IMG/VR virus record: IMGVR_UViG_3300044568_003163
Location: 62,001-126,000 of that record
Strand: one strand, 5' to 3'
DNA: 64,000 bases
Shown: one piece after another, positions 1 through 62,183 of the stretch
Layout: each line of letters begins with the position of its first letter
Numbering within the stretch: position 1 is the stretch's first letter
Notes under the pieces: generated by a model
Seen by the model: the letters and a program-made list of their open reading frames with translations, nothing else
Database searches by the model: none
Told to the model about the DNA's origin: nothing
Position numbers and translations under genes: made by a program

Positions 1-269
1 TCACGGAATTCCTCATCTTTTACGTTTCTCCAAAGATCTGGTGTAACTCCGATAAGTTCACCAGCTAATCCTCTCTTTTCCCACATTGCTTGCATTTTAG
101 CAAGTCCAGCATGTCTCCATGAAGAACTCATTACAATCTTAGCTCCAGTTTCATCTACAATTCGTTTTAGATTGTCCATGAAATGTTGATGGAATATTTG
201 ACCAAACTCATCGTGACCTTGTCCTATCACGTTAAGCACTCCGTCGATATCAAGAAATATTACTTTCAT
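1..269 (-). CDS. HAD-family phosphatase (Swiss-army-knife RNA repair HAD type), partial
   Basis: Manual translation MKVIFLDIDGVLN...IVMSSSWR has the DxDGVL and SSSWR motifs; runs off the window. Confidence 0.8.
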   Translation of the reverse strand, partial: MKVIFLDIDGVLNVIGQGHDEFGQIFHQHFMDNLKRIVDETGAKIVMSSSWRHAGLAKMQAMWEKRGLAGELIGVTPDLWRNVKDEEFR

Positions 270-535
270 AACTTAAAGTATTTGCCTACTTTATCTAGCA
301 TTACCATATCTCGATTATCTTTAAAGGGCAGATCATCAATATCTTCGTATAAGTTTTGAACAAATACGTCTGCTTTATTTTTTGCAATGTAATTATTAAG
401 TTCCTTACGTTTTAAAGCAATTACAATTTCTTTAAGTTCGTCGACAGATAAGCCATCCAAATCACCAGATCCATCACTATAAACTTTGATTTCTCGAGCA
501 AGTGTAATAATAAAATTTGGTGATGATTTAACCAT
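266..535 (-). CDS. hypothetical protein
   Basis: ORF track; overlaps neighbours in operon fashion. Confidence 0.6.
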   Translation of the reverse strand: MVKSSPNFIITLAREIKVYSDGSGDLDGLSVDELKEIVIALKRKELNNYIAKNKADVFVQNLYEDIDDLPFKDNRDMVMLDKVGKYFKL

Positions 536-707
536 TTGATTTGTTCATTACGATTCCTAATTTATTCATATCAGCAAGATTTCCTTTAACATACTTTTTA
601 TTCCATTCTCCGTATGATAGGTTATAATTAATTTCCACCCAAAGATTAAAACCGCCAAACCATCTGCGAGTCCAAAAGTATTTTCCTGTTAGTCTTTTTT
701 CGTTCAT
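528..707 (-). CDS. hypothetical protein (59 aa, not in ORF track)
   Basis: Manual translation MNEKRLTGKYFWTRRWFGG...; fills the gap between adjacent ORFs. Confidence 0.55.
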   Translation of the reverse strand: MNEKRLTGKYFWTRRWFGGFNLWVEINYNLSYGEWNKKYVKGNLADMNKLGIVMNKSNG

Positions 708-1000
708 ATTAATTGGCCGTTTTCAATTTCTTCGGATCTCTTCAATAAACTAACTTCCTTTCTAATTTCACGTCTCCACCATTCCTTTGTAAGCTTAGGA
801 TTATGAATGTCCTTATAAATAGTAAATGCTACTTTAGGTTTTGCAATTTCTATTTCTTCACCCCATAAAATCCATTTCTTACGTTTAGTAATTTCCATAC
901 CATCGTAAAACTCGGTATATTCATAACTGTCGCATTCATTAGCTTCGCATTGAACGGCATATTGAAATTTTCTACCGTCGATTTCTATTTCTTTTAACAT
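704..1000 (-). CDS. hypothetical protein
   Basis: ORF track. Confidence 0.6.
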   Translation of the reverse strand: MLKEIEIDGRKFQYAVQCEANECDSYEYTEFYDGMEITKRKKWILWGEEIEIAKPKVAFTIYKDIHNPKLTKEWWRREIRKEVSLLKRSEEIENGQLI

Positions 1001-1191
1001 TATTCATTAGATATTAAGGCACCTAGCCAAGTTAATTCAAGTCCAACAACAAGTATTCTTCCACCGATAGAGTCAAATAACCACCAATGCATAGGATTAA
1101 AGTCCATAGCAACGAAAGAACCTACTACATAACATGATATATGCAATAGAATATAAAGCGCGAGTTTAAATAGATTTCTCTTCATTATCAA
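1000..1191 (-). CDS. small membrane protein
   Basis: Two hydrophobic segments. Confidence 0.55.
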   Translation of the reverse strand: MIMKRNLFKLALYILLHISCYVVGSFVAMDFNPMHWWLFDSIGGRILVVGLELTWLGALISNE

Positions 1192-1411
1192 GTATTTGAT
1201 TTTGGGTAGTATTAACTGATGCCGGAAATAACATTCGAGTAAGTAACATCATTAAGAACATATCGTTATACGATACGAAAGGTCCATCAAAAATTCTTGG
1301 TACAGTAAGATTCCAAAGAATCATGGTTGGAAATGCAAATACGGCAATTACAATAGCAGCAAGAATAAAATACTGAAAAGTTGCACTTATTCCGAGTAAG
1401 ATTGTCTTCAT
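1166..1411 (-). CDS. small membrane protein
   Basis: Two hydrophobic segments; directly downstream of a promoter cassette. Confidence 0.6.
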   Translation of the reverse strand: MKTILLGISATFQYFILAAIVIAVFAFPTMILWNLTVPRIFDGPFVSYNDMFLMMLLTRMLFPASVNTTQNQILDNEEKSI

Positions 1412-1443
1412 AATAAATAGTTTATTGTTATATGTTTGAAAGA

Positions 1444-1501
1444 GTAAATATAATCAACATTATCTAAAAATGAAAACTTTAGAGCATTTAGTTATTAACA
1501 A
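1444..1501 (-). promoter_or_regulatory. class I promoter cassette (TTGTTAATAAC box + TAnnTTTR -7 element)
   Basis: gttattaacaa at 1491, -7 element at 1445; offset 46. Confidence 0.65.
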
Positions 1502-1508
1502 ATACAAC

Positions 1509-1534
1509 AAAAGCTCAATCTTACGATTAAGCTT
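1509..1534 (-). terminator. intrinsic terminator ending the tRNA array
   Basis: AAAGCTTAATC-GTAA-GATTGAGCTTTT hairpin with U tail on the minus strand. Confidence 0.7.
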
Positions 1535-1592
1535 TATCGAAGGTATATTAGGCCATACCAATAACCAGGACCTTTTCCCTAGGGAAATGTCG

Positions 1593-1675
1593 TGACCAAA
1601 GAGGGACTCGAACCCTCACGCTCAAAGAGCACCAGCTTCTTAGACTGGCGTGTCTACCAATTCCACCACTCGGCC
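1593..1675 (-). tRNA. tRNA-Leu(AAG)
   Basis: Cloverleaf with long variable arm; loop CT-AAG-AA. Confidence 0.85.
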
Positions 1676-1677
1676 GT

Positions 1678-1802
1678 AATGAGCAATCCTATGGAATTAC
1701 TGCAGTTTATCCAAAGGTCGTATATAGCTTGCAGACTAAGATTCTGCTGGATTTTCACCTTCATAAAGCTGGATATCAACGACCCTTATCGCGATTCTCA
1801 TT
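1678..1802 (-). ncRNA. candidate structured ncRNA
   Basis: Nested stems AATGAG/CTCATT, GGTCGT/ACGACC, AGCTT/AAGCT, GCAGA/TCTGC. Confidence 0.5.
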
Positions 1803-1803
1803 G

Positions 1804-1877
1804 TACCCGAGATGGGACTCGAACCCACACTGTACAGGGTTTAAGTCTGATGCCTCTTCCAATTGGGCTACCCGGGC
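1804..1877 (-). tRNA. tRNA-Leu(TAA), short variable loop
   Basis: Cloverleaf; loop CT-TAA-AC; weak anticodon stem. Confidence 0.7.
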
Positions 1878-1880
1878 AAA

Positions 1881-2003
1881 TTAAAGAAGTAAGAAAATGA
1901 ACTCCTTAACAGCTGAACGTTCAATAACTTTAAGAATCATTTTGCTTGTATCTCTAGGATTTGCAACTCCTATAAATTCACAAAATGCTTTTTGTTTATT
2001 CAT
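1881..2003 (-). CDS. 40-aa small ORF
   Basis: MNKQKAFCEFIGVANPRDTSKMILKVIERSAVKEFIFLLL. Confidence 0.4.
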   Translation of the reverse strand: MNKQKAFCEFIGVANPRDTSKMILKVIERSAVKEFIFLLL

Positions 2004-2044
2004 TATTGTTCATTTCAATTTTGTTATTGCATTATTAGGAATAA

Positions 2045-2116
2045 CGATACTATAGGACTCGAACCTATACCTTCCAGCTCGCTCGCCGGAATTCTACCAA
2101 ATTAAACTAAATACCA
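2045..2116 (-). ncRNA. tRNA-like element with non-canonical anticodon loop
   Basis: D arm and T arm (ATAGGTTCGAGTCCTAT) present; 6-nt loop GAGCGA lacks U33. Confidence 0.5.
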
Positions 2117-2153
2117 ACCTTTTTATCTCAATAACAAAAGATGTCCTTCTTTG

Positions 2154-2226
2154 TACCTAAGGAGGGATTCGAACCCACACTGTCATGCTCCTAAGGCATG
2201 TGCCTCTTCCGTTGGGCTACTTAGGC
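2154..2226 (-). tRNA. tRNA-Leu(TAG), short variable loop
   Basis: CATGC-CTTAGGA-GCATG. Confidence 0.85.
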
Positions 2227-2231
2227 AAATT

Positions 2232-2307
2232 GGTAAGTGATGGCCTACTTGTTACCATCTGTCTCTGTTTAGTTGCAACCACTAATCCTGAATGTAGAGA
2301 ACTTACC
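2232..2307 (-). ncRNA. candidate structured ncRNA
   Basis: Closing stem GGTAAGT/ACTTACC with internal hairpins. Confidence 0.4.
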
Positions 2308-2434
2308 TTTTGTTTTATGTTAGCTAATAAACATTGTTTCTAATGTTATTAACATCATCTTTTTAATTTTTGTACATTATAATATACATTAAGCCACAAT
2401 ATGACGTGTTTTGTATATTATAGTGTACATTTTG

Positions 2435-2507
2435 AGCTGACAATCAGGATCGAACTGATGACCTCTTCGATACCAACGAAGTGTTCTTCCAACTGAACTA
2501 TGTCTGC
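2435..2507 (-). tRNA. tRNA-Thr(GGT)
   Basis: CTTCG-TTGGTAT-CGAAG. Confidence 0.85.
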
Positions 2508-2515
2508 ATATTACA

Positions 2516-2612
2516 GGGTTGTTAATTACCTCTTTCGAGGATTTCGGAGTTGAACCGATAGACAAAATTTCAAGTTTCGTGTTTAACCAATAGTTGTTTG
2601 CTGAAACAACCC
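2516..2612 (-). ncRNA. tRNA-core-like RNA without acceptor stem
   Basis: GGGTTGTT/AACAACCC closure around D-like, anticodon-like (CTTGAAA) and T-like arms. Confidence 0.5.
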
Positions 2613-2617
2613 TTTTG

Positions 2618-2691
2618 AGCTGACAGTCAGGATCGAACTGACTCTGTTCCGGGTTACAAATCCGGTGCACCACCATTCATGCGTTGCCAGC
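2618..2691 (-). tRNA. tRNA-Thr(TGT)
   Basis: Loop TT-TGT-AA; cloverleaf. Confidence 0.85.
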
Positions 2692-2701
2692 ATATGTTTC
2701 G

Positions 2702-2772
2702 TTGGGATACTAGGTTTCGAACCTAGGCGGACTGGCTCAAAACCAGTAATGCTACCGTTACATCATATCCCA
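2702..2772 (-). tRNA. tRNA-Gln(TTG)
   Basis: ACTGG-TTTTGAG-CCAGT. Confidence 0.85.
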
Positions 2773-2778
2773 ATGTAG

Positions 2779-2849
2779 TTATCCGAGGTGGATTCGAACC
2801 ACCAATGACTGCACCAAAAACAGTAGTGTTACCGTTACACTATCGGACA
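2779..2849 (-). tRNA. tRNA-Gln(TTG)
   Basis: ACTGT-TTTTGGT-GCAGT. Confidence 0.85.
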
Positions 2850-2850
2850 G

Positions 2851-2924
2851 TGACCATAATAGGATTCGAACCTATAACCGCTGGTTTAGAAAACCAGTGC
2901 TCTATCCAATTGAGCTATATGGCC
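2851..2924 (-). tRNA. tRNA-Arg(TCT)
   Basis: CTGGT-TTTCTAA-ACCAG. Confidence 0.9.
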
Positions 2925-2995
2925 AATTAAGTTCTCCAACCCTGGAACTTATACATATCATCATTAAGCGGTCACATAGAATGTGAGATATGTTG

Positions 2996-3081
2996 AAGAG
3001 AAGATGGGACTCGAACCCACAAACCGAATTAACGGTTAACGGATTAGCAATCCGCTGCAGTACCATTATGCTTACTTCTCT
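2996..3081 (-). tRNA. tRNA-Ser(GCT)
   Basis: GCGGA-TTGCTAA-TCCGT; long variable arm. Confidence 0.9.
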
Positions 3082-3086
3082 ATAAA

Positions 3087-3187
3087 AAGTTAAAGGCAGA
3101 ATTCCAAATCTGCATTTTTATTCTAAAACGAGAATAACGTGAGTTTTATCGATACGTCTATCGAGGCAATTATCACTACTTTAACTT
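3087..3187 (-). ncRNA. candidate multibranch ncRNA
   Basis: AAGTTAAAG/CTTTAACTT closure with three internal hairpins. Confidence 0.45.
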
Positions 3188-3189
3188 AA

Positions 3190-3279
3190 TGGAGGAGAGA
3201 GTGGGATTCGAACCCACGGAACGCTTTCACGCTCAATAGTTTTCAAGACTATCCTAATCAACCTCTCTAGCACCTCTCC
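3190..3279 (-). tRNA. tRNA-Ser(TGA)
   Basis: ATAGT-CTTGAAA-ACTAT; long variable arm; CCA encoded. Confidence 0.9.
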
Positions 3280-3285
3280 ATTATT

Positions 3286-3363
3286 TGGGGTGGAAGACGG
3301 GACTCGAACCCGCGATCTCTAGAACCACAATCTAGCGCTTTAACCAACTAAGCTACAACCACC
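3286..3363 (-). tRNA. tRNA-His(GTG)
   Basis: CTAGA-TTGTGGT-TCTAG; G-1; CCA encoded. Confidence 0.9.
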
Positions 3364-3374
3364 ATGTATAAAAC

Positions 3375-3409
3375 AAAAAAGCTCGATTCATTTGATAGAA
3401 CCGAGCTTT
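3375..3409 (-). terminator. attenuator terminator 1
   Basis: AAAGCTCGGTTC...GAATCGAGCTTTTTT just upstream of tRNA-His. Confidence 0.85.
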
Positions 3410-3443
3410 GCAATTTAGTATTTATATTTTCACATAAGAACCA

Positions 3444-3518
3444 TCACACTTCGGTACTGTTTTCAGATCTTGTTAGATGCTGAAGCGACGTTAACGATAA
3501 TGTACTTGAAGTTCTCAT
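3444..3518 (-). CDS. putative attenuator leader peptide 1 (MRTSSTLSLTSLQHLTRSENSTEV)
   Basis: Lies between promoter and terminator; codons 2-18 are only R/T/S/L/Q/H. Confidence 0.75.
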   Translation of the reverse strand: MRTSSTLSLTSLQHLTRSENSTEV

Positions 3519-3550
3519 TGTTTGTAATTTATTATTTTTTATATATACTG

Positions 3551-3578
3551 TTATATGTCTAAAATTGCTGAGAGTTTC
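3551..3578 (-). promoter_or_regulatory. class II promoter GAAAC-N16-CATATAA
   Basis: Same motif and spacer recur at 6140, 9470, 44907 and 56117. Confidence 0.7.
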
Positions 3579-3603
3579 AAAAAACTTTCAATTTATTTTC
3601 TAG

Positions 3604-3700
3604 TGAAGACAATTGGGATCGAACCAATGGCACGCCTATGTTCCTTATCGATCATACCAATAAGTACTGAAGGTTGCTCTACCAACTGAGCTATATCTTC
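3604..3700 (-). ncRNA. tRNA-like RNA with expanded anticodon domain
   Basis: Intact acceptor, D and T arms; no 7-nt anticodon loop. Confidence 0.65.
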
Positions 3701-3705
3701 ATTTG

Positions 3706-3776
3706 TAGCGGATTAAGGACTCGAACCTCGCCATTGGGTTATGAGCCCGATATGCTACCAATTACACTAAACCGCA
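3706..3776 (-). tRNA. tRNA-Met(CAT), initiator-like, divergent
   Basis: GGG-CTCATAA-CCC; 1:72 mismatch. Confidence 0.65.
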
Positions 3777-3917
3777 AGATGACCTTAAGGATTCGAACCT
3801 TTAACTTGTTTCCTCTTTTAGTTTTGCAAACCTACTCAATTCTACCGTGCCCAATACACTATTGCCAATCGTCATTTTCGAACATGACAGCCTTAAGTTA
3901 ATTACTCTTAAGATTTG

Positions 3918-3989
3918 TAGTCCCACCGGGAATCGAACCCGACTTTTCAGGATGAAAACCTGATGACCTAACCGATAGTCGATAGGACC
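3918..3989 (-). tRNA. tRNA-Glu(TTC)
   Basis: TCAGG-TTTTCAT-CCTGA. Confidence 0.9.
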
Positions 3990-4077
3990 AATTAAGTTAT
4001 ATCAAATTCTCCCGCAGAGATACCGACCCATTGCTGAGCCAGAGAGGACTTGAACCTCTGATTCTCAATAACTAATT
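3990..4077 (-). ncRNA. circularly permuted tRNA-like RNA (YrlA-type topology)
   Basis: Order is stem, T arm, GCAA-capped acceptor-like stem, TA, D-like arm, stem. Confidence 0.55.
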
Positions 4078-4173
4078 TAAAAGAATTAAAGAGTAGAGCT
4101 CTTCAACGATTTCGGCATTTCAGCTGGATCTTTATGCCAACTTCCTAATCCTTAGTCCGTTTAATTCTTGTAG

Positions 4174-4247
4174 TATTATGTACGGGACTCGAACCCGTGT
4201 TATCAACGTGAAAGGCTGACGTCCTAGACCAACTAGACGAACATAAC
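4174..4247 (-). tRNA. tRNA-Glu(TTC)
   Basis: TCAGC-CTTTCAC-GTTGA. Confidence 0.85.
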
Positions 4248-4251
4248 ATTT

Positions 4252-4464
4252 TTAAGCTTCTTCAGAGACAAGTCCTAAAACTTCTTCTCTGTAAATTTTA
4301 TTCAATTCACTTACTTCAATATCGATATTCGTTTGTGGATATCGGTGAAGTAAAATCTTAACTAATCTGATTCGTTTCTCAGCCAAATCTTGATTAAAGT
4401 CCATTTCAATCATTGCATCACTTAAATGAGATTGAATTGCGATTGATAATTTGATAGTTTCCAT
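4252..4464 (-). CDS. hypothetical protein
   Basis: ORF directly after a class I promoter. Confidence 0.65.
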   Translation of the reverse strand: METIKLSIAIQSHLSDAMIEMDFNQDLAEKRIRLVKILLHRYPQTNIDIEVSELNKIYREEVLGLVSEEA

Positions 4465-4488
4465 AATGTGATTGTTTAATTTTAATAA

Positions 4489-4546
4489 GTAAAACTAATC
4501 AATTTAATTGACATATGGAAATTATTTTTCAAAAAGTTATTAACAA
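4489..4546 (-). promoter_or_regulatory. class I promoter cassette
   Basis: Box at 4536; offset 46. Confidence 0.65.
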
Positions 4547-4558
4547 TTTTAAAATAAA

Positions 4559-4732
4559 AAGTTTGTCACCGGCACAGATTGGTGAATACCCAAGTACAAC
4601 CGAATGTACCCGATACCTTACTAACAAAATGAACGGATCTGTGTTTCCTGTATGCGGCAAGTGACCTCCTTCCTTGCTTGTGTTTCCGTATCGATGTGTG
4701 CGGCAACATACCATTTTGAGTTCAACAAACTT
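4559..4732 (-). ncRNA. candidate ~175-nt structured ncRNA
   Basis: AAGTTTGT/ACAAACTT closing stem; GC-richer than flanks; follows tRNA-fMet. Confidence 0.4.
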
Positions 4733-4736
4733 CTTG

Positions 4737-4809
4737 TAGCGGGAGCAGGACTCGAACCTGCGACCTTTGGGTTATGAGCCCACTGAGCTACCAACTGCTC
4801 TATCCCGCA
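4737..4809 (-). tRNA. tRNA-fMet(CAT)
   Basis: GGG-CTCATAA-CCC; unpaired 1:72. Confidence 0.85.
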
Positions 4810-4835
4810 ATATACCTTTTAAGTAGAACCATCAA

Positions 4836-5027
4836 CTATATTTCTGTTGATGATTCTAATTGTCTTAATTTTAAACCTTCTTCAATTGTTTGAATGATGT
4901 CCTCAATTATTTGAGCTCGCGTAACATCAAAGTTACCATTCATTCCATTCAAATCTTTTGCATCAATTGCAATAGATCCTACTGACTTACCGTCTTTCTG
5001 TAATTCAATTACTAATGTATCAAACAT
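4836..5027 (-). CDS. hypothetical protein
   Basis: ORF track; class II-like promoter at 5050-5077. Confidence 0.6.
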   Translation of the reverse strand: MFDTLVIELQKDGKSVGSIAIDAKDLNGMNGNFDVTRAQIIEDIIQTIEEGLKLRQLESSTEI

Positions 5028-5092
5028 AATATAGCTTTTTATTTAATTGTTTTATGCAATTTGAAATAAATTGTTTCTCTTCTTATTAACAT

Positions 5093-5551
5093 CTATCTAC
5101 AGATTCTATCAGCTACATATGAAGCCGAGCATGCATCTGGTTTACATCTAGCGTTATAACCTAATGATTCTACATAACCTAAAGCAGAACGCAGAATTGA
5201 ATTAGATTGATACTTAGGGTCTGGATTAAAATCCAAATCAATAAATGCAGGTTTTTCAATATCATTAGCTTCAAGCCATTGAGCTAATTCAACTGAATCT
5301 TCTACCTCTTTCCAAAGTCTAGTAAATCTATCTAAGATTCTAGGAATTGATTTACGAGAGTAGATAACGTGACCTCCTCGATTACCGTAATGTAAAACAA
5401 TAACCATTGCGTAAATTGTATTTCTTCCAATATTTTGCGAATCTGAACCGATATACATTTTGATGTCTTTACCAGTTGCGAGTTTGTCCTTTAAATAAGG
5501 AATTAAGTCAATTACTTGACCGTTTGTTAACGATTGAAATTTCCGGTCCAT
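5093..5551 (-). CDS. RNase H-like protein, YkuK/DUF458 family
   Basis: IGSDSQ, RLWKEVEDS, IDLDFN and ADR motifs. Confidence 0.8.
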   Translation of the reverse strand: MDRKFQSLTNGQVIDLIPYLKDKLATGKDIKMYIGSDSQNIGRNTIYAMVIVLHYGNRGGHVIYSRKSIPRILDRFTRLWKEVEDSVELAQWLEANDIEKPAFIDLDFNPDPKYQSNSILRSALGYVESLGYNARCKPDACSASYVADRICR

Positions 5552-5571
5552 GATTATTAAATTTATGTTAG

Positions 5572-5642
5572 AGGCGAGTATAGGATTCGAACCTATGTAA
5601 CTGATTTTGCAGACCAGCGCCTAACCGCTCGGCCAACTCGCC
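5572..5642 (-). tRNA. tRNA-Cys(GCA)
   Basis: CTGGT-CTGCAAA-ATCAG; U73. Confidence 0.9.
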
Positions 5643-5647
5643 ATTTG

Positions 5648-5719
5648 TGACTCTAGAGAGACTCGAACTCCCATCTCCTGATCCGTAGTCAAGTGTTCTA
5701 TCCATTGAACTATAGAGCC
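5648..5719 (-). tRNA. tRNA-Arg(ACG)
   Basis: CTTGA-CTACGGA-TCAGG. Confidence 0.9.
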
Positions 5720-5728
5720 ATTATTTTG

Positions 5729-5801
5729 TCGGGAAGACAGGACTCGAACCTGCGGCCTCATGCTCCCAAAGCACGCGATCTACCAACTGATCTACTTCCC
5801 G
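5729..5801 (-). tRNA. tRNA-Pro(TGG)
   Basis: CGTGC-TTTGGGA-GCATG. Confidence 0.9.
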
Positions 5802-5848
5802 TGGCAGAGAGGCTTTTGAAGTGCCCTGCTAGTTCATCTTTTAATTTG

Positions 5849-5922
5849 TCGAATAGACAGGAATCGAACCTGCTAACTGATACGTCCAAGGTACCCGTGC
5901 TTAAAACCTTAGTCACTACTCG
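5849..5922 (-). tRNA. tRNA-Pro(TGG), divergent
   Basis: GGTAC-CTTGGAC-GTATC; atypical D arm. Confidence 0.7.
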
Positions 5923-5931
5923 TTTAAAAAC

Positions 5932-5967
5932 AAAAAAGCCTGAATCGGTTGAATGATTCAGGCTTTT
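5932..5967 (-). terminator. attenuator terminator 2
   Basis: AAAAGCCTGAATC...GATTCAGGCTTTTTT just upstream of tRNA-Pro. Confidence 0.85.
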
Positions 5968-5988
5968 ATATGATGATGTTACTTTATA

Positions 5989-6084
5989 TCATTCAAAAAC
6001 CTGCATACCATTCTCACATGCCTCAGGACGAGGGCATTCTACTGTTAACTGCGATGTTGTTAGTATGTGTGAAAGTATTAACAT
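5989..6084 (-). CDS. putative attenuator leader peptide 2 (MLILSHILTTSQLTVECPRPEACENGMQVFE)
   Basis: Lies between promoter and terminator; E-C-P-R-P-E-A-C-E core. Confidence 0.7.
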   Translation of the reverse strand: MLILSHILTTSQLTVECPRPEACENGMQVFE

Positions 6085-6139
6085 TTTAATTTTTATTAGC
6101 AAAGACTCTTTATCTTTGTTTAGTTCTTTTATATATCTT

Positions 6140-6167
6140 TTATATGTTCCGTTATTGCGGAAGTTTC
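6140..6167 (-). promoter_or_regulatory. class II promoter GAAAC-N16-CATATAA
   Basis: Exact motif. Confidence 0.7.
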
Positions 6168-6316
6168 AAAATTATTTTATTCTTTTCTATTTGTGCTTTA
6201 ATCTTAGCAATCTTTTCTGGACTAGGATTTCTATCTATCGTATACGAAACACCCATCTTGTCCATGTAATCGTAAAGAAGTTGCATATCTTCATTAGTAG
6301 TTTTAGTTGTTTTCAT
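6152..6316 (-). CDS. 54-aa hypothetical protein (not in ORF track)
   Basis: MKTTKTTNEDMQLLYDYMDKMGVSYTIDRNPSPEKIAKIK... Confidence 0.55.
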   Translation of the reverse strand: MKTTKTTNEDMQLLYDYMDKMGVSYTIDRNPSPEKIAKIKAQIEKNKIILKLPQ

Positions 6317-6328
6317 AATAACTATTTG

Positions 6329-6402
6329 AGCGGATATTCGGATTCGAACCGAAACTTCAGACTTGGAAGGCCCACGTGCTAGCCGTTAAACACCATACCC
6401 GC
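6329..6402 (-). tRNA. tRNA-Gly(TCC)
   Basis: TGGGC-CTTCCAA-GTCTG. Confidence 0.85.
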
Positions 6403-6412
6403 ATTTTGTTTG

Positions 6413-6485
6413 AGCAATAAATCAGATTCGAACTGACGACCTCTACCTTGGCAAGGTAATGCTCTACCAACTGAGCTATTATTGC
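6413..6485 (-). tRNA. tRNA-Gly(GCC)
   Basis: TTACC-TTGCCAA-GGTAG. Confidence 0.9.
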
Positions 6486-6552
6486 ATTTGAAGGACTTGC
6501 ACCTTCTGGACATGGTTTGTTTCGCCTAAGTCGCCATGTCAACAGACCCGAG

Positions 6553-6624
6553 AGGGCAGAGTGAGATTCGAACTCACGACCAGTTGATTAACAGTCAACT
6601 GCTCTACCGCTGAGCTATCCACCC
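6553..6624 (-). tRNA. tRNA-Asn(GTT)
   Basis: GTTGA-CTGTTAA-TCAAC. Confidence 0.9.
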
Positions 6625-6630
6625 TTATTG

Positions 6631-6741
6631 CAGGAATGTAAGGAATCGAACCTTAGCATCTTCCGAGACAGGGAGTAATTTATGCAGAATACAATCTTCG
6701 CAGATTGAGTTTTAAGCGTGCTACCATTACACCACATTCCT
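6631..6741 (-). ncRNA. tRNA-like RNA with ~60-nt replacement of the anticodon domain
   Basis: Perfect acceptor, D and T arms; internal CAATCT-GCGA-AGATTG hairpin. Confidence 0.7.
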
Positions 6742-6749
6742 GTATTTTG

Positions 6750-6866
6750 TGGGCTCATATGGGCTCGAACCATAATCTCTTCCTAATGACATCCTACCAT
6801 ACTAAAAAGGAATCGAACCTTAGACTCATTATCGAGAAAGCGCTTTGCCAATTAAGCTAATCGCCC
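6750..6866 (-). ncRNA. tRNA-like RNA with a second T-loop/D-loop inside the anticodon domain
   Basis: TAATGA/TCATTA stem encloses AAGGTTCGATTCCTT and AGTATGGTAG. Confidence 0.65.
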
Positions 6867-6872
6867 ATGTAG

Positions 6873-7004
6873 TGAAGAATCCTAGACTCGAACTAGGAAT
6901 GTCAATTAAGACGCCGGTTTTACATCCTTTAAATTGCTGAATAAACACTTTGCACAGTGTTTGCCTTTTTGGACCGGAGCGTTTACCAATTCCGCCAATT
7001 CTTC
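6873..7004 (-). ncRNA. class II tRNA body with ~54-nt anticodon loop
   Basis: CCGGT/ACCGG stem encloses a long loop ending TGTAAA; variable arm present. Confidence 0.7.
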
Positions 7005-7011
7005 ATTATTG

Positions 7012-7083
7012 TTCTCCCGCTGGGAGTCGAACCCAGCCTCATAGATTAAAAGTCTATTGCCCACACCAGTCTGCTACGAGAGA
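7012..7083 (-). tRNA. tRNA-Lys(TTT)
   Basis: ATAGA-CTTTTAA-TCTAT. Confidence 0.85.
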
Positions 7084-7169
7084 TTGTAAAGTTTTCTATT
7101 GCCAACCTCTCAACAGTGTAGAGTATTGACCTATCTATGTTTTCGCTTCATGTTCATTATATTATTTAG

Positions 7170-7243
7170 TGGCCAAGCCTGGACTCGAACCAGGGACCTT
7201 CGCATTATGAGTGCGCCGCTCTAACCAACTGAGCTACATGGCC
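7170..7243 (-). tRNA. tRNA(CAT), probably Ile2 (lysidine type)
   Basis: Loop CTCATAA; GGCC acceptor resembles Ile2 tRNAs. Confidence 0.75.
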
Positions 7244-7359
7244 AAAAATGTAGGGTTATCCGGTACCTACACTGATTAATGACAATCAGACCATCGTTCA
7301 CCACCTGTAAGAGCCTAACGATAGATACTGTACTTGCTTACACTCAAGTATCCGCTGGG

Positions 7360-7433
7360 TAGCGAGGACCGGGATCGAACCGGCGACCTTTGGTTTATGA
7401 ATCCAATGTTACTACCAACTGAACTACCTCGCC
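7360..7433 (-). tRNA. tRNA-Met(CAT), elongator
   Basis: Loop TTCATAA; GGCG acceptor. Confidence 0.8.
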
Positions 7434-7472
7434 AAATTGTAAGTTTTGAATGGACTTACAACCATTGATAGA

Positions 7473-7703
7473 TTATTGGTGATGAGGAATATACTTTCCG
7501 TTCTTAACTCTAACTGCCAGTTTGGTCACGTTAAAATTCCAACAATCAAATGTACTTAATGCAGATCTTTGTTTTGCAAGACTAATGGCTTGCTTTTCTG
7601 CTTTTTCTCGACCTTCTTCCGTTGTTTCGACGAAAAAAGTGGGAGCCTGAACACCAGTCTTACTGGTAGGAACTACTCTCCAAATTCTCAAATTAGTAAT
7701 CAT
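7473..7703 (-). CDS. hypothetical protein
   Basis: ORF track. Confidence 0.6.
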   Translation of the reverse strand: MITNLRIWRVVPTSKTGVQAPTFFVETTEEGREKAEKQAISLAKQRSALSTFDCWNFNVTKLAVRVKNGKYIPHHQ

Positions 7704-7783
7704 AAGTTTTAGCTAAGCTAGACCTATGAGGAATTGTACGATTTTGTTGACATTTGATTTATATTTTTTTATTATATGTTCGA

Positions 7784-8230
7784 TTAAGCCAGAGATTCAA
7801 TAACCTCTTTTACTAATTTTGTATCGGCAAGACCTGGAAATTTCTTAACGAAAGCACCCATAGTCATACCTATTAATTTTTGTTTGTTTAATTCTAAAAC
7901 AGAACCGAGTAAAACATTAACTTCAGTTTCAATTTCAGCTCTAGTCATTTGCTTTGGCAAGTACTTTTCAATAACACCTAATTCATTAGCTTCAGATTCC
8001 ACTAAATCGAATCGACCAGCTTTTGTAAATTCTTCAATAGATTGTCTACGTTGTTTGATTGTAGAAATTACTGCATTTAGAACTAACTCATCAGTAAGTG
8101 GACCAGCATGCTTTGCCTTTTCAGCATCTTGGATTTTTGCCTTTAATCCACTTAATGCATTCTTCGCAATCGCGTTTTTCTCTTTGAATGCTACTATATA
8201 GTCAGCATTGATTGTTTCTCTTAAATTCAT
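7784..8230 (-). CDS. GatB/YqeY domain protein
   Basis: KQRRQSIEEF..AGRFDL..E..E..VIEKYLPKQM signature. Confidence 0.9.
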   Translation of the reverse strand: MNLRETINADYIVAFKEKNAIAKNALSGLKAKIQDAEKAKHAGPLTDELVLNAVISTIKQRRQSIEEFTKAGRFDLVESEANELGVIEKYLPKQMTRAEIETEVNVLLGSVLELNKQKLIGMTMGAFVKKFPGLADTKLVKEVIESLA

Positions 8231-8246
8231 CTTTACTAATTTTTAG

Positions 8247-8327
8247 TGGGCAACAGTGGACTCGAACCACTCCCGTGAGGACCAGATTTACAGTCTGGCT
8301 GCCGTATCCGAACGACTTTTGCGGCCC
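8247..8327 (-). tRNA. tRNA-Tyr(GTA)
   Basis: CCAGA-CTGTAAA-TCTGG; variable arm; atypical D arm. Confidence 0.8.
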
Positions 8328-8336
8328 ATTATATTG

Positions 8337-8410
8337 TGACTCCTCTGGGACTCGAACCCAGGACTCCCTCATTAAAAGTGAGGTGCTCTAGCCGACTGAG
8401 CTAAGAAGTC
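8337..8410 (-). tRNA. tRNA-Lys(TTT)
   Basis: CCTCA-CTTTTAA-TGAGG. Confidence 0.9.
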
Positions 8411-8420
8411 ATTGTAATAG

Positions 8421-8494
8421 CAGTCCTAACGGAATTCGAATCCGCAATCTCTTCCGTGACAGGGAAGCGTCATACGCCAATATGCTGTAGGACT
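8421..8494 (-). tRNA. tRNA-Asp(GTC)
   Basis: CTTCC-CTGTCAC-GGAAG. Confidence 0.8.
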
Positions 8495-8581
8495 ATATAA
8501 AAATTATTTAGTTTAAGCTCCTTTAAACCATGTAATTTCAGGGAGCTATTTGAGCTTATGCATGGAACTAAATAATAATTG

Positions 8582-8655
8582 CCGAGATGACGGGACTCGA
8601 ACCCGTGACCTTCGCCGTGACAGGGCGACATTGTAACCAACTCTACTACACCTCG
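8582..8655 (-). tRNA. tRNA-Asp(GTC)
   Basis: TCGCC-CTGTCAC-GGCGA. Confidence 0.85.
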
Positions 8656-8714
8656 ATTTCTAATTTCACGCTCACACTATGCAGTTCTATAAATTAGTAA
8701 CAGTCTCATCTGGG

Positions 8715-8788
8715 CTCTCCTGACTGGATTCGAACCAGTAACCCTCACCTTAACAGGGTGTCGCTCTAACCGTTGGAGCTACAGGAGA
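8715..8788 (-). tRNA. tRNA-Asn(GTT)
   Basis: CACC-CTGTTAA-GGTG. Confidence 0.85.
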
Positions 8789-8811
8789 ATATTTGATGTT
8801 TTAATTATAAG

Positions 8812-8869
8812 ACAAATATAAACAATGTCATTGACATATGAAAATATTTAATCAAATAGTTATTAACAA
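8812..8869 (-). promoter_or_regulatory. class I promoter cassette inside the tRNA array
   Basis: TATATTTG at 8813-8820, box at 8859; offset 46. Confidence 0.75.
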
Positions 8870-8873
8870 TTTG

Positions 8874-8945
8874 TGGAGCTACCGGGATTCGAACCCGGAA
8901 TAACAGAGTGCAAGTCTATCGTGATGCCAATTTCACTATAGCCCC
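8874..8945 (-). tRNA. tRNA-Ala(TGC)
   Basis: GGGGCTA acceptor with G3:U70; loop CTTGCAC. Confidence 0.9.
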
Positions 8946-8955
8946 ATTAAATTTG

Positions 8956-9030
8956 TAGGAGATGACGGAATCGAACCGACGACCTTTTGCGTGTAAAACA
9001 AACGCTCTAAACCAACTGAGCTAATCTCCT
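8956..9030 (-). tRNA. tRNA-Val(TAC)
   Basis: TTTGT-TTTACAC-GCAAA. Confidence 0.9.
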
Positions 9031-9036
9031 AAATTG

Positions 9037-9110
9037 TAGGTAATATGAGACTCGAACTCATAACCTCCTCGGTATCAGCGAGGTGCTCTAACCAATTGAG
9101 CTAACTACCT
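9037..9110 (-). tRNA. tRNA-Ile(GAT)
   Basis: CCTCG-CTGATAC-CGAGG. Confidence 0.9.
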
Positions 9111-9117
9111 GTGGCAG

Positions 9118-9188
9118 CACGAATGGAAGGATTCGAACCTTCATCGACGGTTTTGGAGACCGGCATGCTACCATTGCACCACACTCGT
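9118..9188 (-). tRNA. tRNA-Trp(CCA)
   Basis: CGGT-CTCCAAA-ACCG. Confidence 0.9.
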
Positions 9189-9195
9189 ATTTTAG

Positions 9196-9268
9196 TGGTA
9201 AGGGACGGGATCGAACCGTCATCATCGGATTTTCAGTCCGCTGCATAGACCAACTTTGCTACCTCACC
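9196..9268 (-). tRNA. tRNA-Phe(GAA)
   Basis: CGGA-CTGAAAA-TCCG. Confidence 0.9.
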
Positions 9269-9274
9269 AAAAAC

Positions 9275-9308
9275 AAAAAACCTCTGAATTTTTGAAGATT
9301 CAGAGGTT
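9275..9308 (-). terminator. attenuator terminator 3
   Basis: AACCTCTGAAT...ATTCAGAGGTTTTTT just upstream of tRNA-Phe. Confidence 0.85.
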
Positions 9309-9335
9309 AAAGTATATTGTATTAAAATATCGATA

Positions 9336-9434
9336 CTACATCCGAATCACATTGCTATCCACATAATCATTCCCGGCAAACTTAATCGCCCAGTCAAAAT
9401 TCATGTTAATATTTATGTTAGTAGTAGGTATCAT
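9336..9434 (-). CDS. putative attenuator leader peptide 3 (MIPTTNININMNFDWAIKFAGNDYVDSNVIRM)
   Basis: Lies between promoter and terminator; composition matches the downstream tRNA block. Confidence 0.75.
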   Translation of the reverse strand: MIPTTNININMNFDWAIKFAGNDYVDSNVIRM

Positions 9435-9469
9435 TTTATTGATGTTTTAATATTGTTTTATATATACTG

Positions 9470-9497
9470 TTATATGTTCTAAATTTCAAAAAGTTTC
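9470..9497 (-). promoter_or_regulatory. class II promoter GAAAC-N16-CATATAA
   Basis: Exact motif. Confidence 0.7.
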
Positions 9498-9526
9498 AAC
9501 TTATTTTTATATTATTTTAATCTTAG

Positions 9527-10090
9527 TTAGTCCCACCAAGAATCATATTCTTTAGCGAAGATTTCCATTGCTAAAGCAAAGTCTTTACTTCTATTCAAAT
9601 GAGCAATTTTCATACCCATTATGTATTCTTTGTTCTTTTTTCTCAGCTGAGCAGGTGTATATCGCTCATCATTCCTATCCATCAATCTGTGGCAATCTGG
9701 ACGATCTTCGCAAGGAATAGTATAGTAATCTGACTTACCCCATTTAGCGTCATGCTTTTCTCTATATGGCTCGTCGTAGTTATCTTCATGCACTTTCGTT
9801 AATAACTCTAAACATTCAGTCATCGTTCGAATTTGCTTTTCGCGATTCTCATCGACTGTATGGCCATGGTCTTTAACGTATTTGATATGAGCTTTCAACT
9901 TAAAAAGAATTGGTTCCATAATGTAATGGTTATCCCAATCTCTATCTCGCCATACAATAGGCATCCATCGAATTATATTCTTAATTCCTCTCACAAAATC
10001 CTTGGAAGGAATCTTGACGTATTCCTTCCAATAAAATTTTGCATTGTCTACCGCTTCTTCAACGTAGAACTTAATTCGTTCGTTTATCAT
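9527..10090 (-). CDS. conserved phage hypothetical protein
   Basis: W.DRDWD motif and terminal WWD seen in large phages. Confidence 0.65.
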   Translation of the reverse strand: MINERIKFYVEEAVDNAKFYWKEYVKIPSKDFVRGIKNIIRWMPIVWRDRDWDNHYIMEPILFKLKAHIKYVKDHGHTVDENREKQIRTMTECLELLTKVHEDNYDEPYREKHDAKWGKSDYYTIPCEDRPDCHRLMDRNDERYTPAQLRKKNKEYIMGMKIAHLNRSKDFALAMEIFAKEYDSWWD

Positions 10091-10104
10091 ATTGATGTTA
10101 TTGA

Positions 10105-11421
10105 TTAACCTTCAGCTTCTTCGGTATCAATTACTCCAGAATCTTTTACGATTCCTTCAAGTACTTTGAATTCGAAAGACTTGAATTTGAATGTTTTGTT
10201 TACCAAACCACCTTCAATTCTTACACAAACTCCTTCTTTGATATGTCTAGTATCTAAGATAGATGGACCAGTTCCGAATGTTTCGACGGTGTTGCTGAAA
10301 TATTCTCGCAAATCTCTATCATCGAATTTATGAGTGATTGCTTCTAATTCGTTTAAGGTTATCGTAGCAACATGTGGTACAGTTTTTACACCTAATTCAT
10401 TACAACGTTTTACAACATCATTCCAAGCATAATCGATAGATTGACCATCTTCATTAGCAAATGTCATACGGTAAACATAAACCTCAGATTGAGTAGGTTC
10501 ACAACCATAAGAATAAGCCATAGACTTACCGTATTGTTTCGTAAACTCTTTATCACCCATTTTGGTTGTATCAACAGATGGCATAATTGCAGCTCCTGTA
10601 GATTCGTAACCTACAATTTCAAAATAAACGGTTTCACCTTTTCTTAAGTTACCTTTGAATAAGTTCATTGCTTTATCTCGGATGGTTGGGTCATGGAATT
10701 GATTTGCGGATTTTGATTCTCCTAAAACAACTCTACGAGTACCATTCAAATAAGCCCATTCTTTGTCGTTGATAGCTAATCCAAATTTAGTAACAAGTTT
10801 TTCTAACCAACCTAATTCTCTAGTCATTTGAACGTGACCAATACGACCTGAAGTACCGTGAAGTTTTTCAGTAATAATGATGTGTTGACCCTTTTCAAAT
10901 TCGTGGATACTCTTACCAAAGTGTCCGGTATCAAAATGTTCTTTGAACATTACAGAAGATCTAGAAACTCGGGTTTTCTTACCTTGATTTTCTCTAGCAA
11001 TTTTAGCCGTATTTGGATTTACATATTTGTTACAGATAGGTACACCTTTCCATTCGTCAAATTCAAATCCTTCTACATCTAAACCAGTTACCATAATGAA
11101 TCCAAAGTAATGTAATGGAACCCAGAAACCATCAGAGATTTCACCTCTAAATTTTTGAGCTCTTACTCTTCGGTTTGCATCGAACATTCCACCTTTCTCA
11201 TCTTTTCTAGCATTTAACTCGGCATCACGATAAAGGTTGTTTGCTTTACAGAACTCATCGGATAACTGACCATCAGATGGAAAGTAAACTCCTAAATGTC
11301 CTTCTAAAGAATCTAAACCAATTACTACTTGATTACCGTGACAAGTTGCTAATTGAACTTTGTCTGCGTTAGGATGTGGTCTCACGTTTGTCAACCTAGT
11401 GACGATTGCATTGTATGCCAT
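10105..11421 (-). CDS. RNA ligase (DRB0094/Rnl2-like with N-terminal OB-like domain)
   Basis: HPNADK, TEKLHGTS adenylation motif, EGVCVR, FKFKS. Confidence 0.85.
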   Translation of the reverse strand: MAYNAIVTRLTNVRPHPNADKVQLATCHGNQVVIGLDSLEGHLGVYFPSDGQLSDEFCKANNLYRDAELNARKDEKGGMFDANRRVRAQKFRGEISDGFWVPLHYFGFIMVTGLDVEGFEFDEWKGVPICNKYVNPNTAKIARENQGKKTRVSRSSVMFKEHFDTGHFGKSIHEFEKGQHIIITEKLHGTSGRIGHVQMTRELGWLEKLVTKFGLAINDKEWAYLNGTRRVVLGESKSANQFHDPTIRDKAMNLFKGNLRKGETVYFEIVGYESTGAAIMPSVDTTKMGDKEFTKQYGKSMAYSYGCEPTQSEVYVYRMTFANEDGQSIDYAWNDVVKRCNELGVKTVPHVATITLNELEAITHKFDDRDLREYFSNTVETFGTGPSILDTRHIKEGVCVRIEGGLVNKTFKFKSFEFKVLEGIVKDSGVIDTEEAEG

Positions 11422-61973: not shown

Positions 61974-62183
61974 TTATTTCTTGTTAGCGGGTTCGAATGT
62001 TGACGTATACCAATTTTTGTCGTATAAACCTTTTGGCCATTCTTTTGATTCGATTACAACACCTTGAAATTCTTTACTCGAGTAGTTGCAGGTAGTTTCA
62101 GTACACATAATTATAGTGTTACCTGATTTGTTTGTGTATAATTCTCCTTTTAGGAAAACTTTTCTTTCTATAAAATCTTCCAT
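61974..62183 (-). CDS. hypothetical protein
   Basis: ORF track. Confidence 0.55.
   Translation of the reverse strand: MEDFIERKVFLKGELYTNKSGNTIIMCTETTCNYSSKEFQGVVIESKEWPKGLYDKNWYTSTFEPANKK

Follow-up and report, generated by a model that had tools for sequence, protein, structure and literature searches.

Organization of the tRNA region

The window analysed here is a 64,000-nucleotide (nt) stretch of the virus record IMGVR_UViG_3300044568_003163 (positions 62,001 to 126,000 of that record), itself a 294-kb IMG/VR contig, and consists of AT-rich phage DNA in which every gene lies on the minus strand. Approximately 38 transfer RNA (tRNA) genes are found between positions 9268 and 1592 (35 detected by ARAGORN, with 2618-2691, 3604-3700 and 6631-6741 added by Rfam), and the window contains three units in which a promoter-like box, a short open reading frame (ORF) and a terminator precede a block of these genes, the terminators lying 10-15 nt before the first tRNA. 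Judging from the sequence and from modelled folds, we consider it probable that each unit is a ribosome-mediated transcription attenuator gating a phage tRNA block. The evidence is computational throughout, comprising sequence analysis and fold prediction, and the phage is uncultured. For unit 1, the presence of the elements of a leader-peptide attenuator in the right order is supported; these elements and the block that follows them are:

3537..3580, minus strand: promoter-like box of unit 1 (TTGAAA at 3580-3575, then a 21-mer at 3557-3537)
3444..3518, minus strand: leader ORF of unit 1 (24 codons; ATG at 3518, TGA at 3446-3444; putative regulatory run in codons 2-18, 3515..3465)
3434..3518, minus strand: large leader hairpin, predicted to hold the antiterminator strand when no ribosome is present, like the 1:2 'protector' of trp
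3458..3451, minus strand: candidate antiterminator strand AGTACCGA (codons 21-23), with its partner TCGGTTCT at 3404..3397 in the 5' arm of the terminator
3367..3409, minus strand: putative intrinsic terminator of unit 1 (12-bp stem 3409..3378, 8-nt loop, then the T run TTTTTTGTTTT)
1592..3362, minus strand: tRNA block 1 (His-GTG, Ser-TGA, Ser-GCT, Arg-TCT, two Gln-TTG, Thr-TGT, Thr-GGT, Leu-TAG, Leu-TAA, Leu-AAG and one unassignable gene)

When the upstream regions of the three units were aligned, they were found to share the promoter-like box. The window has exactly two copies of its 21-mer, one at 3557..3537 and one at 9476..9456 upstream of unit 3 (0 expected in shuffles), and we infer from the sequence that the box functions as a promoter. 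The terminator hairpin of unit 1 folds on its own with -16.5 kcal/mol and, because its stem ends only 15 nt upstream of tRNA-His, leaves no room for a promoter in front of that gene.

Codon content of the unit 1 leader

The leader ORF of unit 1 (3518..3444) reads as the original prediction had described it: codons 2-18 are AGA ACT TCA AGT ACA TTA TCG TTA ACG TCG CTT CAG CAT CTA ACA AGA TCT, and 17 of 17 encode Arg, Thr, Ser, Leu, Gln or His. These amino acids make up 0.298 of the residues of 64 long ORFs of the window, which gives the 17/17 run a probability of p = 1.1e-9 (p = 8e-8 under a base-composition null), well outside what chance would give. No longer run of this kind exists in the six frames of the 64-kb window, where the runner-up has 13 residues. 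Furthermore, the leader frame is both the sole open frame and the sole matching one, with 19/23 residues belonging to this set versus 10/23 and 5/23 in the other two.

Block 1 comprises 11 assignable tRNAs with ten distinct anticodons; one of these, Thr-TGT (2618-2691), was detected by Rfam and also by ARAGORN at a low threshold. The claim that the six amino acids of the run are the only ones served by the block holds for these 11 tRNAs and does not extend to the gene at 2044-2116 (minus strand), which has an 8-nt anticodon loop and an identity that could not be assigned. At the level of codons, the near-exact match proposed at the outset was borne out: the anticodons of block 1 read 16/17 codons of the run by standard wobble (P = 4e-9), TCT alone not being strictly read, and over the whole leader 18/23 codons are decodable by the block, compared with a null mean of 5.9 in simulations using the codon usage of the phage. 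All ten of the ten anticodons are represented in the leader, including Leu-TAG, Leu-TAA, Leu-AAG and Arg-TCT (P = 1e-4, same-phage codon-usage simulation). The leader ORFs start in an A-rich context without a Shine-Dalgarno motif, as do the other genes of this phage: a Shine-Dalgarno-like motif was detected in 5/71 window genes (ORFs of at least 100 codons), the starts being preceded by A-rich, G-poor sequence.

Units 2 and 3 of the same window

The same build is repeated upstream of the two other tRNA blocks:

5934..6084, minus strand: unit 2 (leader ORF 6084..5989, 31 codons; terminator 5967..5934, 11 nt before tRNA-Pro)
3604..5922, minus strand: tRNA block 2 (two Pro, Arg-ACG, Cys, Met, two Glu, Met and a tRNA-like gene, with three ORFs interspersed)
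9279..9500, minus strand: unit 3 (promoter-like box at about 9500-9456; leader ORF 9434..9336, 32 codons; terminator 9308..9279, 10 nt before tRNA-Phe)
6328..9268, minus strand: tRNA block 3 (Phe, Trp, Ile, Val, Ala, Asn, two Asp, Lys, Tyr, two Met, Lys, Asn, two Gly; also a tRNA-like gene and a few ORFs, the YqeY/GatB-like one among them)

The stop codons of the three leaders (ORFs 9434..9336, 6084..5989 and 3518..3444) lie 21-34 nt upstream of the respective hairpins, and a degenerate version of the promoter-like box is present just upstream of unit 2 (about 6150-6125). Leader 3 contains all 11 amino acids for which block 3 has a tRNA and includes a run of 21 matching residues, while the core run of leader 2, E-C-P-R-P-E-A-C-E, stands before a block with Pro, Pro, Arg-ACG, Cys, Met and Glu tRNAs. 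When leaders and blocks of the window were scored against each other, the true pairing reached a total of 55 and the five other pairings no more than 43. The discrimination extends to synonymous codons: Arg is encoded by AGA in leader 1, whose block has Arg-TCT, and by CGT in leader 2, whose block has Arg-ACG.

Leader and tRNA content in related genomes

Relatives were collected with the RNA ligase, the YqeY-like gene and the 152-amino-acid ORF at 5093-5551 as baits, and ORF/hairpin/tRNA units were located in them with a script. The same architecture was recovered in approximately eleven lineages, mostly from lake metagenomes and with genomes ranging from AT-rich to GC-rich, and in all related units the equivalent ORF ends 21-34 nt before the hairpin. 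When 19 amino acids were scored in 10 units, those with a tRNA in the block were present in the leader in 77/77 cases, versus 52/113 for those without one; Cys, for example, occurs in the leaders of 3/3 units with a Cys tRNA in the block and of 0/7 units without one. The leaders of all 10 units tested are enriched for block-decodable codons relative to the codon usage of their own genomes. The match is again frame-specific, with 172/273 residues in the leader frame versus 103 and 87 in the two alternative ones.

Most can be learned from the points on which the relatives differ. L005 possesses two units, for which the true leader-block pairing scores 56 versus 13; its Gln/Ser/His block has additional Cys and Pro tRNAs and the corresponding leader contains Cys twice and Pro three times, and its Phe block includes Glu tRNAs and is preceded by a leader with two Glu residues, versus none in leader 3 of the window. 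In L022, a block of Gln, His, Trp, Ile and Arg tRNAs (all five confirmed by Rfam) follows a leader with the core I-H-R-I-T-S-I-Q-R-W-Q. The blocks of L038, L040 and L043 are restricted to Phe, Val, Trp and Ile tRNAs (Phe not being found in L043), and their leaders have the core F-A-F-V-A-I-W-F-A-V-I. At the other extreme, the leaders of L081 and L082 contain all 15 amino acids of their blocks, and Leu, His and Cys are absent from them.

The correspondence is resolved down to isoacceptors. The leader of L014 carries AAA and AAG, GCA/GCG and GCC, and ATA and ATT/ATC, and both isoacceptors of each of these amino acids are found in its block. In the GC-rich L085, the leader codons ACG, ACA, ACC; CCA, CCG, CCC; TTG, CTC, CTG; and GGA, GGT face a block with Thr-CGT/TGT/GGT, Pro-TGG/CGG/GGG, Leu-CAA/GAG/CAG and Gly-TCC/GCC, that is, one leader codon for each Thr, Pro, Leu and Gly isoacceptor; overall, 17/18 anticodons are matched, compared with a null mean of 7.9.

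The leaders of Phe blocks share a conserved core, N-F-x-W-A..F-A.G-N, in several relatives. A degenerate DNA pattern of this core, searched against viral contigs, returned mostly chance matches and no new lineage among the matches listed. No cultured phage was found to have near-identical DNA; among cultured phages, the most similar RNA ligase (46% identity) is that of a Vibrio jumbo phage, in which no tRNA genes are annotated within about 20 kb upstream or 6 kb downstream (to the end of the record) of the ligase gene.

Terminators and predicted alternative pairings

Hairpins followed by T runs are located directly before the first tRNA gene in nearly all units. When nine Phe-block-type terminators, from window unit 3 and from relatives, were aligned, 8/11 stem pairs proved to have compensatory changes. 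In the nascent RNA, before the 3' arm of the terminator has been made, the last part of the ORF is predicted to provide the strand that pairs with the 5' arm. In 13/14 units, the strand that forms the best duplex with this arm is located no more than 22 nt from the stop codon, a placement that shuffles give with a chance of about 0.25-0.4 per unit.

In our ribosome model, all RNA up to 12 nt downstream of the A-site codon is taken to be covered, a value assumed from known footprints. The modelled antiterminator persists in most units until the A site has arrived at the last 5-9 codons of the ORF, or at the last 1-3 codons in the group of L035, L038 and L043. Block-matching residues are concentrated before the point at which the antiterminator would be lost (174/231, versus 32/69 after it; Fisher P = 1.3e-5). 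An antiterminator is predicted in all units, and its duplex energy is significant in L081, L022, L026, L005_A and window unit 2, and not in unit 1. In unit 2, the duplex between CAGGTTTTT and AAAAGCCTG has -10.7 kcal/mol, with 9/300 shuffles as good, and it contributes -14.9 kcal/mol to the fold of the nascent RNA, which 0/200 shuffles match. For most units, a comparison of the antiterminator stabilisation energy with that obtained after shuffling the upstream sequence is uninformative, because the real leaders contain competing structure.

The whole leader of unit 1 is strongly structured (-39.4 kcal/mol, z = -4.3; 0/200 shuffles fold as well). Without a ribosome, AGTACCGA is locked in the ORF-internal hairpin of the predicted fold and the terminator is free to form. 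Once the 5' part of the ORF is masked, with codons 5-17 occupied, the AGTACCGA/TCGGTTCT duplex (7 pairs with one U-U mismatch) appears in the minimum-energy fold, and it is lost again from codon 18-19 onward. As modelled, these fold states are those of the classical three-state trp design. The antiterminator pairing of the original prediction has the positions stated there and appears in the masked fold; its energy does not rise above that of shuffles, and there are no sequence variants that could speak for it.

Proposed mechanism

The sequence analysis establishes how the units are built, how composition and codons match, how these co-vary in relatives, and which alternative folds are predicted. 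We infer that the box is an active promoter, that the ORF is translated, how efficient the terminator is and in which direction regulation works. Transcription would start at the conserved box and run through the short ORF. A fast ribosome would reach the stop codon and cover the last codons, which contain the only good partner of the 5' arm of the terminator; with these codons masked, the terminator would fold and RNA polymerase would halt 10-15 nt before the first tRNA gene. Should the ribosome be delayed at an earlier codon, the antiterminator strand would remain free to pair with the 5' arm, and the block would be transcribed. The regulatory codons would be those read by the downstream tRNAs, approximately one or a few per isoacceptor, and, because these are the codons served by the block, the quantity sensed would be the charged-tRNA decoding capacity for them. 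The outcome would be a negative feedback on the phage's own tRNA supply. In the untranslated state, unit 1 would keep its antiterminator strand in the ORF-internal hairpin, as in trp, and most other units would be read through by default.

Such a logic would fit a shortage of tRNAs, not one of amino acids, as might arise from a mismatched host pool, from decay of host tRNAs or from cleavage by anticodon nucleases; the link to anticodon nucleases is conjectural, and the adjacent RNA ligase gene is compatible with it and proves nothing. We lean towards a more specific form of the proposal, in which the leaders act as 'roll-call' attenuators with approximately one codon per downstream isoacceptor: the phage would check decoding isoacceptor by isoacceptor and switch its tRNA genes on only when decoding fails, the trigger could be host tRNA decay or anticodon-nuclease cleavage, and the leaders would change along with the gain and loss of tRNA genes and with their transfer between blocks.

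Weighing of the evidence and of alternative explanations

The attenuator interpretation gains most from the recurrence of the arrangement, three times in the window and in approximately eleven lineages, with leader codons that change along with the downstream tRNA set. Several observations weigh against it. The units are partly homologous, and the pooled P values consequently overstate their independence. Leader and block can be out of step: L003 (4217-9436; RNA ligase 91% identical) has leaders identical to those of window units 3 and 1 and lacks unit 2 as well as most block-3 tRNAs, and leader A of L005 contains Trp, for which no tRNA was found in its block. The match of leader 2 to its own block is no more than modest (10/30), and the first half of this leader resembles the set of block 1 as well as the B-type leader of L005, a pattern which suggests that leader 2 may descend from one that once served both blocks. 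Most regulatory codons occur once or twice, without the long runs of most classical attenuators, and because of this the sensitivity of the sensor is uncertain. The original prediction is weakest in the particular antiterminator pairing that it proposes for unit 1: 112/300 shuffles give a duplex as good, and L003, the sole relative with this unit, is identical there, so that the pairing has no support from covariation. Across units, a matrix of cognate versus non-cognate duplexes is only weakly diagonal, and we therefore base our assessment on where the partner strand lies and on the ribosome-mask profiles.

Alternatively, the short ORF could sense decoding of the block's codons and act on an output other than an intrinsic terminator, such as Rho-dependent termination after uncoupling, access of RNase E or RNase P, or stability of the precursor. 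The match between codons and tRNAs supports a translation-based sensor and is silent on its output; moreover, the antiterminator energies of several further units are unremarkable, the duplexes being no better than those of shuffles, and the hairpin of L085 has a poor T run. Against this stand the T-run hairpins, which in nearly all units immediately precede the first tRNA, a stem preserved through compensatory changes, the location at the stop codon, in 13/14 units, of the strand that pairs with the 5' arm, and matching codons that stop where the ribosome would begin to cover that strand. Such a geometry is specific to terminator/antiterminator switching, and we regard a different output as improbable.

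Explanations without a translational sensor fare worse. The hairpins could be ordinary leaky terminators that set a fixed, reduced tRNA level or end upstream transcripts, next to small ORFs that are there by chance or are irrelevant; stem-loops before tRNA genes can indeed be plain 3' ends, and small ORFs are common in AT-rich DNA (119 ORFs of at least 20 amino acids in 8 kb). This is strongly disfavoured and very unlikely in the face of a 17-residue run with p of about 1e-9 that is the longest in six frames, a match confined to one frame, matches specific to individual blocks inside one genome, leaders that track the tRNAs down to isoacceptors in approximately eleven lineages, and a conserved promoter-like box that lies upstream of the ORF and not downstream of the terminator. 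An equally slight probability attaches to the possibility that the ORFs encode functional micro-proteins, for instance small membrane or regulatory peptides, which merely adjoin tRNA genes. The conserved core of the Phe-block leaders would be in keeping with this, but that core overlaps an ORF-internal hairpin. Moreover, the leaders of different units are unrelated in sequence and yet each of them 'contains every amino acid of its block', and a peptide function predicts neither the shifts in composition with gain and loss of tRNAs nor the tracking of isoacceptors by synonymous codons. The least credible alternative is direct RNA-tRNA sensing of the T-box kind, in which the leader RNA would bind uncharged tRNAs without translation. 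T-box leaders do gate terminators by tRNA charging, but as many as 17-18 different tRNAs would here have to be recognised by a single leader, the signal is limited to one ATG- or GTG-started frame ending 21-34 nt from the hairpin, and no match of the leaders to the T-box or another Rfam family supports such sensing, even at E up to 1.

Relation to known systems

The attenuator proposed here resembles the classical leader-peptide attenuators of amino-acid biosynthetic operons of Proteobacteria (trp, his, leu, thr, ilvGMEDA and pheA) in having a short leader ORF with regulatory codons, a terminator ahead of the first gene and a second, competing pairing that depends on the position of the ribosome; in addition, unit 1 has a predicted trp-like protector hairpin. 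Several amino acids can be sensed at once in classical systems as well, as in thr (Thr, Ile) and ilv (Leu, Val, Ile). The differences are that classical attenuators control enzymes, whereas the phage units would control tRNAs; that classical leaders have runs of one or two amino acids, whereas those of the phages list 5 to 15, with isoacceptor-specific codons; and that the phage logic would correct a shortage of decoders, not of amino acids, in a phage genome with units in series. We found no similarity between the phage leaders and classical ones by sequence or covariance model, and unit 1 gave no match to an Rfam leader family at E up to 1. Sub-threshold matches were obtained for unit 2 (5926-6022, minus strand) with Thr_leader (RF00506; 25.2 bits, gathering threshold 55) and the trpB motif (RF04312; 29.7 bits, gathering threshold 59), and these matches (E 0.3-0.8) are probably driven by the terminator hairpin.

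Functionally, the nearest system is the pheST attenuator of Escherichia coli (pheM leader), which controls phenylalanyl-tRNA synthetase in response to the level of charged tRNA and thus also acts on a component of decoding; it is, however, cellular and concerned with a synthetase and one amino acid, whereas the phage units would control tRNA genes in response to many isoacceptors. T-box riboswitches likewise sense the status of tRNA and use a terminator/antiterminator switch upstream of translation-related genes, but they bind one uncharged tRNA without translation, via a specifier codon and the T-box sequence, whereas the signal in the phage is predicted to be a translated frame; no T-box was matched by Rfam in positions 1..11000 at E up to 1. 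The tRNA clusters of phages T4 and T5 are similar in placing phage tRNA genes among small ORFs and homing-endonuclease genes on long precursor transcripts. In the annotated tRNA region of T5, 0/12 small ORFs examined list the amino acids of neighbouring tRNAs, and the annotated terminators (three in the stretch examined) are all outside the tRNA clusters, their positions being taken from the record annotation only.

We know of no attenuator on the tRNA genes of T4 or T5 and of no leader-peptide attenuation of bacterial tRNA genes, and to our knowledge the control that phages exert over their own tRNA genes is essentially uncharted. A full-text literature search, in which most subscription journals lay outside the coverage and an older report may thus have escaped us, returned no account of attenuation acting on tRNA genes of phages or bacteria. 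The principle is that of the classical attenuator; the novelty lies in the genes targeted, which are those for tRNAs, in a phage genome as the setting, where several units follow one another, and in a sensor of many codons that is resolved by isoacceptor. If the proposal is correct, these would be the first attenuators with the decoder itself as output and the first multi-codon sensors that resolve isoacceptors. They would explain the ordered blocks of phage tRNA genes and provide a direct readout of the codons that the phage expects to be limiting in its host. Phage tRNAs would then be a regulated, not a constitutive, response to depletion of host tRNAs and to tRNA-targeting defences, amounting to an inducible counter-defence after host tRNA decay or anticodon-nuclease cleavage. 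The compact modular design, with a promoter, approximately 30 codons and a hairpin, could also serve as a sensor of decoding capacity.

Other features of the tRNA region

The tRNA region is followed by one further hairpin:

1510..1535, minus strand: terminator-like hairpin after the last tRNA gene, where the tRNA region ends

The two tRNA-like genes at 3604-3700 and 6631-6741 (minus strand) are 97 and 111 nt long, with good acceptor, D and T arms and extra bases in the anticodon arm. Intron-bearing tRNAs were rejected as an answer for these odd genes, the intron mode of ARAGORN having yielded implausible introns. Together with the gene at 2044-2116, they are possibly pseudogenes, unusual tRNAs or decoys. 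Spacers between Glu and Met tRNA genes (3777-3916 and 3990-4172, minus strand) contain fragments resembling T-arms of tRNAs, e.g. GGATTCGAACC; neither spacer received a call from Rfam or ARAGORN, and the fragments may be remnants of disrupted tRNA genes. A GC-richer non-coding stretch at 4540-4735, downstream of tRNA-Met (4736-4809), had no Rfam match, no match in the phage collection and an unremarkable fold (z = -0.3).

Among protein-coding genes, the window carries those for an RNA ligase, a nicotinamide phosphoribosyltransferase and a YqeY/GatB-like protein. The RNA ligase gene (10105-11421, minus strand) lies directly upstream of the tRNA region, and the YqeY/GatB-like gene ('tRNA amidotransferase', 7784-8230) and a DUF458/ribonuclease-like ORF (5093-5551) lie inside it, both on the minus strand. 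DUF458-like and YqeY-like genes are again found within the tRNA arrays of L074-L076, L081, L082, L084, L085 and Pseudomonas phage Milchi. Several window genes have a TATAAATA-like box just upstream, recalling the late promoters of T4-type phages.

The ORFs of the window read normally under the standard code. Suppressor-type tRNAs, with anticodons TTA and TCA, are located in or near the tRNA arrays of L066 (about 1490-1563), L081 (about 8615) and L082 (about 13980), which hints at read-through or recoding of stop codons in some relatives. Finally, the cultured T4-like Pseudomonas phage Milchi (PQ464597; L208, 26377-26640) has an annotated ORF of 44 codons, behind which come a T-run hairpin and then tRNA-Arg and tRNA-Phe. 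The codons of this ORF match the following tRNAs weakly (P of about 0.02-0.04), and the terminator arm has its pairing partner 3-10 nt upstream of the stop codon; this unit, a single weak look-alike, may be a culturable analogue.

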